This document shows, in pieces, positions 21,551 to 28,400 of a stretch of 64,000 nucleotides of DNA. This DNA comes from Epiperipatus broadwayi. Its lineage: Eukaryota > Animalia > Onychophora. Under the pieces are notes generated by a model. The model made no database searches, was not told where the DNA came from, and worked only from the letters and a program-made list of their open reading frames with translations. The position numbers were made by a program, and so were the translations under genes. How positions within the stretch are numbered: position 1 is the first letter of the stretch; the number at the start of each line of letters is the position of its first letter. The stretch is taken from contig JAQFVV010000008.1 of the NCBI GenBank assembly GCA_028023455.1, positions 14,694,001 through 14,758,000 on the forward strand, in the 5' to 3' direction.

Positions 21551-21601
21551 AAAAAAGGATTTAATTTTAGCATCACACCATATAATATCCATTTATTAGA
21601 T
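21551..21601 (+). pseudogene. Penelope-like ORF N-terminal remnant, left part (interrupted)
   Basis: KKGFNFSITPYNIHLLD matches the PLE motif KGLNF..TP..IP..DII. The reading continues at 27918. Confidence 0.6.
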
Positions 21602-21989
21602 ATAATAATAATAATAATAATAATAATAATAATAATAATAATAATAATAATAATAATAATAATAATAATAATAATAATAATAATAATAATAATAATAATA
21701 ATAATAATAATAATAATAATAATAATAATAATAATAATAATAATAATAATAATAATAATAATAATAATAATAATAATAATAATAATAATAATAATAATAA
21801 TAATAATAATAATAATAATAATAATAATAATAATAATAATAATAATAATAATAATAATAATAATAATAATAATAATAATAATAATAATAATAATAATAAT
21901 AATAATAATAATAATAATAATAATAATAATAATAATAATAATAATAATAATAATAATAATAATAATAATAATAATAATAATAATAATAA
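21602..21989. repeat. (AAT)n microsatellite, ~129 units
   Basis: Uninterrupted aat/ata/taa run directly 5' of the Tx1-like element. Confidence 0.98.
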
Positions 21990-22212
21990 AGTCTCGCAGC
22001 AAATGATGATTTTAACGGATCGTTGTTTACAGAGATCTTAGGAGTTTAACCAAAGAAAACACTAAAACCAACACATCTTTGACTTGCAGTTATATATATA
22101 TGAACAGTAAGTATTGGACAATCCAAATTAATTTGTATTTTAACTAAATAGATATTTTTATGAATTGTTTTGTTAAAAATAATATTCGTTGCTCAACGTA
22201 AAAAGCATTACA

Positions 22213-23940
22213 ATGGCGACACCCCGGTCATGTGACCAGCAGAACGGCGCCAATATGCTATCCAAGCCTATGCAAATTACAGGTGAAGCAAAAACATATG
22301 CCAACGTAGCTAAAAATAATTTACAGGAAAATAATTTCTCTTCGGAAAAAAATAATTTACAACAAAAAGAACACAATCAAGTTCCAATTTTAGAAAAAAA
22401 TAAAGTTTTCCATCGCTTCCGAAAAATAAATACTAATGATATTTTGCAGCTAGATATACAAACGCAAGAAAATCAATGCCCCCCTACCGCCCAGTGGAAT
22501 AATGAGGATTTGAAAATAATATGTGAACAGTTTAATAATACGATCCCACGTGGCCTTCATACGTCTTTCAAAAGATTTTTTTCTCCTCGTTCAATAATAT
22601 TATCAGCTACAGATGCAAATTTATCGCTATATAAATTTCCTAGAAATTTACTTTATGAAGCAATAACACTACACGGACTTTGGGATAGCATACTAAGGAT
22701 TGCTGACCATCCTAACTCACGGTATTTAATCCTCGAATTTTACCAAGAAAGCCAAAAAACCCGGTTTCAAACCACCATTAAAACTTTAGGCAACTATGCA
22801 CTCATTGCAGTAGATCCAGATCAACATAACCAGATTACTGGCATAATCAAGAATGCATACCTTGGATATGACATCAAAATCTTTCAGAAAATGATGCAGC
22901 CATTTGGAAAAGTCACAGCATTCAACCCAATTTATCTGAAAGATACGCCAGTGCTTGTATACAGCAATAGCTTTGACTTCAAGCTGAGATTGCATCCAGA
23001 AATAGATCCAAACAATATTCCTACACAATTTGCAGATCAGGAAGCCATGCTGAGCCTCTTCATAAGAGGGCTTAAACCCATATGCTACACATGCGGGAAG
23101 CGAGGCCACTTGGCAACGCAATGTGACACCAAAAAGAATCCACAATCGCAAAAAACAAATGGAGTGGCCATCCAAACACATACTGAAGACAGCAACCATA
23201 TATATAATGATAGCATAAATCCAAATATGTACAACAATATGCAAACAACTTCTCCACCTGAAGAAACACTCTCACTCCCTCTCATTAATCAAAATTCCAA
23301 TGAGGAAAATAAAAACACAGATGAACTAAACAGCGACCATCTGAAAAAACAATGTGATAACAGAAAGAGTCTACAATCACAGCAAACAAATAATCAGCTC
23401 AACCACACACAAACGGAAGATATCAGCCACACTAACATAGTCAAGATAAATTCAGATATGAATAACCAGATGCAAACAACTTCTTCATCTAAAGAAGATC
23501 AAACTACAAAAAACCAAGACAACAGTATAAATGAACCAAACAGAATGCAGCACTTAAATCCAAATGTCACACAAGCAATTCAAAATAACACAAGCAACTG
23601 TCAAAACATACAATGCACGAATGATTCAAATATTAACCCAACTGAAATATCACAAAGCAATTACAGTGAAACACAAAGTACCAATAGAACAAACATCACA
23701 CACACAATAAAAAATAACACATCAACATATATCATGGAAGCAATCATGCCATGCCTTCCACAAGTTGAAGTAAATACAATAGAAAAAAAAGGGCCAGGTC
23801 GCCCAAAAAGAAGCAAAAACAATAAAAAACCAAAAACAGAAGAGGACAACAACTCACAAACAGAAGAGTACAACACCGCATCATCATTAACCAGAATTCA
23901 AACGGATGACTGGTCACCAATGGACATCACTTCTATCTAA
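22213..23940 (+). CDS. ORF1 (Gag-like nucleic-acid-binding protein, 575 aa from first ATG)
   Basis: Open frame. MQPFGKV...IPT...IRGLKPICYTCGKRGHLATQC (RRM-like region + C-X2-C-X4-H-X4-C) fits the Tx1-type ORF1 pattern. N/Q/T-rich tail containing KKGPGRPKRSK. Confidence 0.88.
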   Translation: MATPRSCDQQNGANMLSKPMQITGEAKTYANVAKNNLQENNFSSEKNNLQQKEHNQVPILEKNKVFHRFRKINTNDILQLDIQTQENQCPPTAQWNNEDLKIICEQFNNTIPRGLHTSFKRFFSPRSIILSATDANLSLYKFPRNLLYEAITLHGLWDSILRIADHPNSRYLILEFYQESQKTRFQTTIKTLGNYALIAVDPDQHNQITGIIKNAYLGYDIKIFQKMMQPFGKVTAFNPIYLKDTPVLVYSNSFDFKLRLHPEIDPNNIPTQFADQEAMLSLFIRGLKPICYTCGKRGHLATQCDTKKNPQSQKTNGVAIQTHTEDSNHIYNDSINPNMYNNMQTTSPPEETLSLPLINQNSNEENKNTDELNSDHLKKQCDNRKSLQSQQTNNQLNHTQTEDISHTNIVKINSDMNNQMQTTSSSKEDQTTKNQDNSINEPNRMQHLNPNVTQAIQNNTSNCQNIQCTNDSNINPTEISQSNYSETQSTNRTNITHTIKNNTSTYIMEAIMPCLPQVEVNTIEKKGPGRPKRSKNNKKPKTEEDNNSQTEEYNTASSLTRIQTDDWSPMDITSI

Positions 23941-24035
23941 CCAACCAATTAAAACTCCAACAATGTACAGCTCATACAATGAAAACCAGTCACTAACATA
24001 TTTTGAAATGTGAACAATCCCAAAATACAACCATA

Positions 24036-27000: not shown

Positions 27001-27273
27001 ATGATAGGAGCATATAGACAATCTAACACAACCCTTCAAACAATCATTAATTCATATTGCAAAGGCTCTATTCCATCAGTCCGTGCAGCCACTTTTATGC
27101 TTTATGCATACTGGTGCACTAGATGCACATTCACTCTAGGTAACAACACAAGGCGACATCCATCAACTTTCAATATCAAACTGGCAAAACTACGAGCCAG
27201 AGACAATAAAATTGCACATCCAGACATCTATGCAGCAACCTGGTCACTGATAACACAACAATCAAACCTCTAA
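24036..27273 (+). CDS. ORF2 APE endonuclease + reverse transcriptase + zf-RVT, split by one frameshift near 25638
   Basis: APE: FNVRGLN, LLETK, GDFN, LIDL, SDH. RT: IRPISM, DIESAFDSV, SQGSPLS, YMDD. C-terminus: CPLC..EETQEHLFYLC. The two ORF-track frames (24003-25727, 25615-27273) overlap. Confidence 0.88.
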
Positions 27274-27743
27274 GATGGCTCCCAATAACCAAAATCTATG
27301 CCCTCAACCAATATATATATATATAAAAAAAATGTGGCAATTATCTACAAATAAAAAAACAGAATGTTGTCTTTGATTGCATAATATTAATATAAAGGAC
27401 AGTAACAACAAAATCAGACCTCAAATACTGGAAAGCAAACTAAACCCAGCATGGCAATATACATCAAAGTTGAAGTTTTGCAAATTGAACAATGATAACC
27501 CAAGACTTTGGAGAACTATGATTACAGCAAGCAGCACTCATAAATGTAACGTATACATATGTATTTTCACCCCCCCCTAACAATGTTTAAATATCTTTCC
27601 CTCCTAAGTTAAGTTCCTTTTTTGTACATCACAGATACCAACTTAAACTTGGTTTACTCACTAGCAATGTAAATATATGTATACGAAGTGTCTTATAGCA
27701 AATGTAACTCTATGGTTATCAATAAAGTTCTTTTCTTTGAAAC

Positions 27744-27916
27744 ATAATAATAATAATAATAATAATAATAATAATAATAATAATAATAATAATAATAATA
27801 ATAATAATAATAATAATAATAATAATAATAATAATAATAATAATAATAATAATAATAATAATAATAATAATAATAATAATAATAATAATAATAATAATAA
27901 TAATAATAATAATAAT
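27744..27916. repeat. (AAT)n microsatellite, ~57 units (3' tail of the element), followed by (ATT)4
   Basis: Direct reading of the sequence. Confidence 0.98.
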
Positions 27917-27917
27917 T

Positions 27918-28400
27918 ATTATTATTATTAAAGAAGTCATTCAAAAATTGCTTCTAGAAGAAGCAGCAAAATTACACTAGAGAATAAAAAGTTTGAAAGA
28001 GACCAACAATTCAAATTAAAGATTTTACATATTTCAAACTAGATAAGTTTAAAATCATTTCCCCTGCTGACAAAAATAATGCTATAATTATAATGAAAAC
28101 TACTGATTATAATAATAAATATGAGAGCGCCTCCTAGCGGATTAATACAAAAAGGTGGCAAGAAATTTCTATATTTGCTACAAAAATAAGGCAACAAGCC
28201 TTATTTAAAAAGCATTATAAAAACTTCAGAAAAAAGTGAATTAATAAAATAATTCAGCAAAATCCACATCTTTATAGTCTACCTAGGTTCTTACTCCTTT
28301 GGCATACAAGATACAATTAATTGTGAGGGATTCTAAACATTTTGTGGAATTAATCAAAAACTTAAAAATATAAAAATATCTTTAGGGAGTAAGAAACATT
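27918..28400 (+). pseudogene. Penelope-like ORF remnant, right part (pre-RT region)
   Basis: IIIIKEVIQKLLLEEAAKL, then PADKNNAIIIMKTTDYNNK (cf. PADKGN..VVM...DY..K), PHLYSLPR (cf. P.LYGLPK) and RDSKHFVELIKNL. Frameshifted. Confidence 0.7.

Follow-up and report, generated by a model that had tools for sequence, protein, structure and literature searches.

The window analysed here is a 64,000-nucleotide stretch of the genome of the onychophoran Epiperipatus broadwayi (contig JAQFVV010000008.1, positions 14,694,001 to 14,758,000, forward strand), in which a long interspersed nuclear element (LINE) lies between two long arrays of AAT repeats. The two arrays are probably the halves of a single pre-existing array, split by a young, (AAT)n-specific LINE whose endonuclease is of the apurinic/apyrimidinic (APE) type. 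Both arrays are pure (Tandem Repeats Finder; 100% match, no indels), and the space between them is filled by the element, which measures 5,754 bp and has a G+C content above that of its surroundings. The element is a LINE with two open reading frames (ORFs). The initial annotation of this DNA had described about 129 AAT units on the 5' side and about 57 on the 3' side of a Tx1-like retrotransposon, and this description of the arrays holds. No other AAT/ATT run of more than 7 units occurs in the whole 64-kb window, and none of at least 8 units in 57.5 kb of control window DNA and 61.5 kb of unrelated loci. The features are, in order:

21338..21601, plus strand: left part of an old retroelement relic that encodes a reverse transcriptase (RT); it ends ...TTATTAGAT, and 40 paralogous matches (70-78% identity) stop at this boundary.
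21602..21989, plus strand: 5' (AAT)n array, pure, (ATA)129.3, read as the upstream half of the target array.
21990..27743, plus strand: full-length (AAT)n-specific LINE with 5' untranslated region (UTR), ORF1, ORF2 and 3' UTR, ending ...TTTGAAAC.
22213..23940, plus strand: ORF1, 575 aa, with one CCHC zinc knuckle (Pfam zf-CCHC, E 3.4e-5).
24036..25727, plus strand: first frame of ORF2, with the APE endonuclease and the start of the RT (Exo_endo_phos, 2.1e-11; N-terminal part of RVT_1).
25615..27273, plus strand: second frame of ORF2, with the remainder of the RT and a C-terminal zf-RVT (CCHC) domain (RVT_1, 2.8e-26; zf-RVT, 2.9e-6).
27721..27743, plus strand: AATAAA signal and conserved 3' terminus ...TTTGAAAC, common to the sister families.
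27744..27916, plus strand: 3' (AAT)n array, pure, (ATA)57.7, read as the downstream half of the target plus a tail that is probably small.
27915..27932, plus strand: (ATT)5 plus AAA, a repeat of inverted polarity in place of about 13 nt of paralog sequence.
27933..28370, plus strand: right part of the same retroelement relic; blastn matches to 19 paralogs start here, and tblastn with paralog ORFs reaches 28370.

The reading of the arrays as split target DNA is carried by the other copies of the element in the genome, which is 5.6 Gb in size and very AT-rich. The first 411 bp of the element recur in at least 40 copies that are about 100% identical (264 first-look candidates); for the last 304 bp the candidates number 864. 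Within the final 1.8 kb, the copies differ by 0-0.6% in substitutions (99.4-100% identity), and variation in the length of internal (TA)n and poly-C runs makes up most of the differences between them. This is a very young family, and with so few substitutions between copies the insertion is so recent that the two arrays cannot both have grown since. At element positions 4882 and 4179 (window 26871 and 26168), the same G-to-A or C-to-T difference recurs in 3-5 near-identical copies among loci L031-L060, which could reflect subfamily structure or the recurrent decay of methylated CpG.

At the 5' end, a repeat array of 13-681 bp borders all 29 anchored full-length copies and consists of (AAT)n in 28 of them; in the full-length copy L004 the 5' neighbour is pure (AAG)n of 627 bp, with (AAT)18 ahead of it. 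At the 3' end, array length in 30 copies lies between 0 and 455 bp, with at least 6 units in 26. When target specificity is defined as the same sequence type in more than 20% of the flanks of copies (PMC4494074), the flanks of this family exceed that share. The family is (AAT)n-specific, as had been proposed for the window copy, and both flanks of the other copies bear the proposal out.

The truncated copies reveal the nature of the 5' arrays. Fourteen of the 30 3'-anchored copies lack their 5' part, with the truncation point in the last 1.8 kb, and in 11 of these 14 the DNA directly 5' is (AAT)n of 15-496 bp. Because a truncated cDNA cannot carry a 5' leader, the 5' arrays are target DNA. The 5' junctions of full-length copies occur in all three repeat phases; one extra G stands at the junction in five of these copies, and one to three extra A or GA in a few. 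An extra 5' G typically marks a capped full-length template, and its presence in five copies places the start of the element RNA at base 1. Where both junctions are known (12 copies), the 5' array makes up a mean of 0.51 and a median of 0.56 of the two arrays combined; the mean fits random landing in an existing array and leaves little room for a large RT-made addition at the 3' end. Because the array is read as target DNA, the long 5' array of the window was not made by the window insertion. The earlier proposal that the insertion built repeats at both junctions thus conflicts with the arrays of the truncated copies, with the extra 5' G and with the 5' share of 0.51. Two further structures were seen beside copies of the element. 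At L040 (1-241), an inverted piece of the element, 1542-1782, is attached to one of the 14 truncated copies, which begins at element position 4188, a 5' inversion that resembles L1 twin priming. At L037, the AAT tail gives way to (AGG)/(AAG)n, beyond which lies a truncated relative (ORF2 45-57% identical), and the flanks of L004 and L037 may indicate an AAG-associated sister lineage.

Insertions outside the arrays define the target more closely. Copy L039 is enclosed by a 12-bp target-site duplication (TSD; ATAATAATATTT) and copy L050 by a 9-11-bp TSD around ATAATATA (ATAAT), neither with added repeats, while L048, at the right border of an array, lacks a 3' array. Taken together, the three copies indicate a minimal site of ATAAT(A), a duplication of about 3-4 repeat units and a template-derived tail that can be zero. 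Arrays are, moreover, abundant: those of at least 11 units, in the same phase and after any non-A base, number 32,691 genome-wide, which is one of three phase classes and hence a lower bound for the genome. With at least this many in one phase class, targets are plentiful without the element making them. Off-array copies that have TSDs of 9-12 bp only and no long tail, together with this supply of arrays, also speak against array building at both junctions.

In the proposed mechanism, the endonuclease would nick the (ATT)n strand of the AAT/ATT duplex, the minimal site seen being ATAAT(A). A short run of AAU repeats that ends the RNA would pair with the nicked strand and prime reverse transcription. 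A second nick about 9-12 bp away, equal to 3-4 units, would leave a duplication that is invisible inside an array, its length being shown at the two non-array sites. At the window locus, the element would have landed in a pre-existing pure array of about 180 units and split it into 129 + 57.

The DNA around the arrays records the site before any array was present. Both flanks belong to one old RT-encoding repeat, and 19 of its paralogs (71-77% identical) are contiguous across the site with no array (blastn). Because the paralogs carry none, the array is younger than the deposition of the host repeat, in agreement with the initial annotation, in which the array was not ancestral. That annotation had also joined the flanks into one Penelope-like frame interrupted at a few Ile codons. 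The 19 contiguous paralogs support a single RT-encoding repeat, but not the codons: the paralogs read D-I-M-A-A-T-E-E-V at the site, where only ATAAT resembles the repeat, and the ancestral site had one Ile codon, not an Ile run. The Penelope-like label is that of the annotation; the ORF of paralog L075 (506 aa) holds RVT_1 about 170 aa downstream of a GLNF...LLD motif, and the loci end before any endonuclease domain. A PDB search with the host relic was uninformative. In the window copy, about 13 nt of paralog sequence are missing, and (ATT)5 plus AAA stands there instead, before the shared ...GAAGTC. Polarity switches of this kind, with (AAT)n beside (ATT)m, are frequent (window 27915-27929, at the right edge of the 3' array; L015, L016 and L046; and pairs such as C1:10861452/10861482). 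More fragments homologous to the RT ORF of the host family lie at window 20958-21225 (minus strand) and 40782-40988; one of these fragments is inverted and stands immediately upstream of the insertion-bearing relic.

The genome holds at least six diverged sister families, that of the window element among them, whose 3' ends read ...TTGAAAC and continue into AAT repeats; they are here called the guild. Of the 29 5' arrays, 12 start exactly at the 3' end of another ORF2-bearing LINE (51-99% amino-acid identity at the ORF2 C-terminus), so the suspected abutment of arrays on earlier LINE 3' ends is real; these related LINEs ahead of the 5' arrays represent at least six diverged families with AATAAA...GAAAC-like termini. 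The 3' arrays lead into the 5' ends and ORF1 of relatives (46-54% identity), into truncated relatives, or into the 3' ends of distant LINEs on the opposite strand. At L034, L042 and L047, a distant LINE (RT 36-37% amino-acid identity) lies inverted past the 3' array, with its AATAAA-bearing 3' end facing the array; since its own tail would read (ATT)n, arrays can have LINE 3' ends on both sides. The presence of relatives at the array borders implies that AAT arrays are hit repeatedly. Junctions between GAAAC and an array recur about 5.7 kb apart on one strand (C8:1401964, 1407668 and 1413390; C1:21799576 and 21805404), a spacing that points to head-to-tail stacks of full-length elements. At C12:736946 and 737309, the junctions are a few hundred bp apart, as expected of very short truncated copies between arrays. 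Genome-wide, GAAAC is followed by (ATA)11 at 3,507 sites and by (ATA)14 at 3,327. A recurrent repeat consisting of (TCAAT)n and then ...TTTATTTA borders several AAT arrays, on the 3' side at L055-L058 and, reversed, on the 5' side at L015.

Several observations weigh against a split of one pre-existing array. The lengths of the two arrays in the window are taken from the assembly alone. A search of the assembly with both flanks returned no empty allele or haplotig, the only 100% match being the locus itself and the rest paralogs at 67-78%. Public data support the left flank through short-read contigs of one sample, in which the contig ends where the array starts; comparison of the left flank with these contigs, which do not exclude heterozygosity, gave no alternative allele. 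With no empty allele or second haplotype found, the pre-insertion state of the site is never seen. No array is present in 19 of 19 paralogs, and the loss of about 13 nt and the gain of (ATT)5 in the window copy go beyond plain slippage. Guild-led arrays are over-represented among the landing sites of the family: those that start at exactly GAAAC account for 7 of 29, versus the 10.7% (about a tenth) of same-phase AAT arrays that a guild GAAAC end leads, a comparison in which array length is a confounder. Finally, a junctional CAT triplet is reiterated far above other variants, which suggests that the RT is able to produce blocks of repeats; part of any array could then be RT-made.

How the pre-existing array itself arose can be estimated roughly. 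Ordinary replication slippage from a seed stands at about even chances; an earlier LINE insertion, body-less or with its body later lost, whose tail was lengthened by RT stuttering, is a serious but lesser candidate, and a small remainder falls to something else.

In a specific version of events, the 5' array would be the RT-made tail of an earlier guild insertion at a weak ATAAT site, into which the present element then homed. The earlier insertion would have been tail-only or would have lost its body later, and its tail would have been lengthened by telomerase-like reiterative copying. This course of events is unlikely, though several observations fit it. The paralogs have only ATAAT, like the minimal targets of L039 and L050; the missing target of about 13 nt recalls the deletions associated with target-primed reverse transcription; in 12 of 29 cases the target array is the tail of an earlier relative; and, with 14 of 30 3'-anchored copies truncated in the last 1.8 kb, remnants down to about 300 nt lie between arrays. 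However, a tail-only insertion leaves no diagnostic sequence, and none is present at the locus. The two bona fide non-array insertions gained no tail, the 5' and 3' arrays are equal in mean length, and the GAAAC end leads only about one in ten of the same-phase arrays.

The reiterated CAT triplet bears on the same idea. At three independent 3' ends from two families (L012, L057 and L059), the junction reads GAAA-(CAT)9-22-(AAT)n, the triplet being composed of the last base of the UTR and the first two bases of the tail. The copies with 9-22 CAT units are less than 0.7% diverged, and a comparison for shared origin shows that L057 and L059 share only length variants also present in other copies. 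Genome-wide, TTGAAAC is followed by (ATA)5 in 4,127 cases and by (ATC)5 in 1,460, versus 29 for (ATG)5 and 23 for (ATT)5. This 50-fold excess of the C variant is not predicted by point mutation plus slippage. It hints at stall-and-slip copying at the UTR boundary during reverse transcription, as a lead rather than a proof; it also fits with DNA-replication slippage at the array boundary or with sister families whose native tails are ATC, and to that extent the CAT blocks also count against a self-made target.

It is conceivable, though doubtful, that the guild RTs stall where the AAU tail meets the 3' UTR, re-copy a 3-nt template in the manner of telomerase, and so make and enlarge their own target arrays. 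If stuttering of this kind occurs, (CAT)n would be its visible scar, whereas (AAT)n would be lengthened invisibly. The elements would then inhabit a self-constructed genomic niche, and the process could explain a sizeable share of long AAT arrays, those of the window included. The CAT reiteration at the UTR-tail junction offers a countable signature, which could make LINE RT stuttering as a microsatellite builder directly testable.

Synthesis of both arrays in one insertion, through RT reiteration at both junctions or from a transcript with AAU at both ends, is very improbable. The arrayless ancestral site agrees with it, and tandem elements separated by arrays make read-through transcripts with a 5' AAU leader conceivable, but truncated copies have 5' arrays, the extra-G junctions show that the RNA begins with base 1 of the element, the 5' junction is found in each of the three repeat phases, and the non-array insertions have plain TSDs and no arrays. 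Growth after the insertion is scarcely credible: an insertion at a minimal ATAAT would have been followed by replication slippage of duplicated 3-4-unit seeds to 129 and 57 units, and TSDs do leave an (ATA)2-3 seed at either end of the element, yet seeds of 2-3 units fall under the usual slippage thresholds, the near-identity of the window copy to dozens of others leaves very little time, and L039 and L050 are without such growth. An assembly artefact, with wrong array lengths or a wrong join of element and locus in a multi-copy, low-complexity context, is equally hard to credit, for although short-read contigs end at the array edge, dozens of independent loci show this anatomy too, read support for the left flank extends as far as the array, and both flanks match one paralog family in register.

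The LINE that is read here as having split the array carries the coding set of an autonomous element. ORF1 has a CCHC knuckle, and ORF2 contains Exo_endo_phos, RVT_1 and zf-RVT domains, providing endonuclease and RT. The AATAAA signal lies about 20 nt upstream of the terminus ...TTTGAAAC, and the repeats start directly after this terminus without poly(A). In the window copy, ORF2 is broken into two frames by one frameshift, and the stretch 25520-25820 measures 301 nt, compared with 300 nt in 39 other copies. Because these 39 copies are 1 nt shorter in that stretch, the frame break is private to the window copy; the extra nucleotide could be a genuine mutation of this copy or a fault in the assembly. 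The family is apparently active, judging from the 99.4-100% identity of its copies and from the 39 others that are free of the 1-nt excess.

From its predicted domain architecture, the element belongs to the L1 group (L1/Tx1 type), and to this extent agrees with the initial annotation, which had called it Tx1-like. ORF2 combines an N-terminal APE, an RT and a C-terminal CCHC (zf-RVT), ORF1 is separate and bears its own CCHC knuckle, and no RNase H was found. Among solved structures, the best relative of the RT, as of the endonuclease, is human L1 ORF2p. An exhaustive search of 1.84 billion representative proteins places the nearest at 28-30% identity to the RT, and a word-indexed protein search gave 6 weak matches. 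The nearest library relatives share this APE-RT-zf-RVT architecture and likewise lack RNase H, and the few named matches are plant or algal L1-type proteins; no clade name occurs among the protein matches (two cluster look-ups, ESM Atlas). An exact look-up of ORF1 in public assemblies returned no record. L082, the closest public relative whose 3' end can be read, terminates in poly(A), and no AAT array is present in the contigs of the nearest public relatives, L081 and L082, which is uninformative on target conservation.

Target-specific LINEs serve as models for how endonuclease choice and RNA-tail pairing fix the integration site, and they are under exploration as tools for site-directed insertion. 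The guild is useful in this respect, since it is APE-type and AAT-specific and comprises several diverged sister families in one genome, and the natural off-target insertions of the family reveal the minimal site and the TSD. For genome annotation, it explains the stacked LINE copies in many long AAT arrays.

Several known systems share parts of this anatomy. Lepidopteran RTE elements generate families of simple sequence repeats (PMC2887409), and Alu and L1 tails are sources of microsatellites (PMC3812793). As in the window family, LINE 3' ends are coupled to microsatellites there, and slippage during retrotransposition has been proposed as a source of repeats; in contrast, those elements have no reported homing back into the repeats, whereas the repeat of the window family is also its target. 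Waldo and Mino, of the R1 clade, target ACAY and AC repeats (PMC3812793). Together with telomere- or ribosomal-DNA-specific LINEs, they resemble the window element as target-specific APE LINEs that pile up in tandem in a repetitive safe haven, but they belong to another clade and have other targets, and the best solved relative of the window endonuclease is that of L1, not that of R1 or TRAS.

Dong, of the R4 clade, is the classical TAA-repeat-specific element (PMC3812793). It shares with the window element the same target repeat (TAA = AAT) and a position within the array. Dong has a single ORF and a restriction-like endonuclease C-terminal to the RT. The window element, by contrast, has an N-terminal APE-type endonuclease and a separate ORF1, which rules out membership of the Dong/R4 clade, and the resemblance is one of convergent target choice. 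The I factor of Drosophila reportedly has (TAA)n 3' tails (Chambeyron et al. 2002). In this element, a UAA/AAU repeat at the 3' end of the RNA, not poly(A), starts reverse transcription, and the repeat number varies between copies. A short AAU-type RNA 3' repeat in place of poly(A) would be common to both; unlike the window element, the I factor does not target repeats and is a member of the I clade, with an RNase H.

Close parallels in architecture are Kibi, Koshi and the crocodilian Tx1 families (Kojima and Fujiwara 2004, as cited in PMC4494074). These families belong to the Tx1 clade and target (TC)n, (TTC)n and (TTCC)n/(TTTC)n (PMC4494074, PMC3812793). Like the window element, they are microsatellite-specific, APE-type, two-ORF LINEs that are flanked by the repeat on both sides and have an APE-RT-CCHC ORF2, a likeness of architecture; the window element differs in targeting (AAT)n. 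No paper on an APE-type AAT-specific lineage was found in the literature searched, a limited library. Microsatellite-specific APE LINEs as such are already established, and the window family adds an AAT-specific lineage to them.

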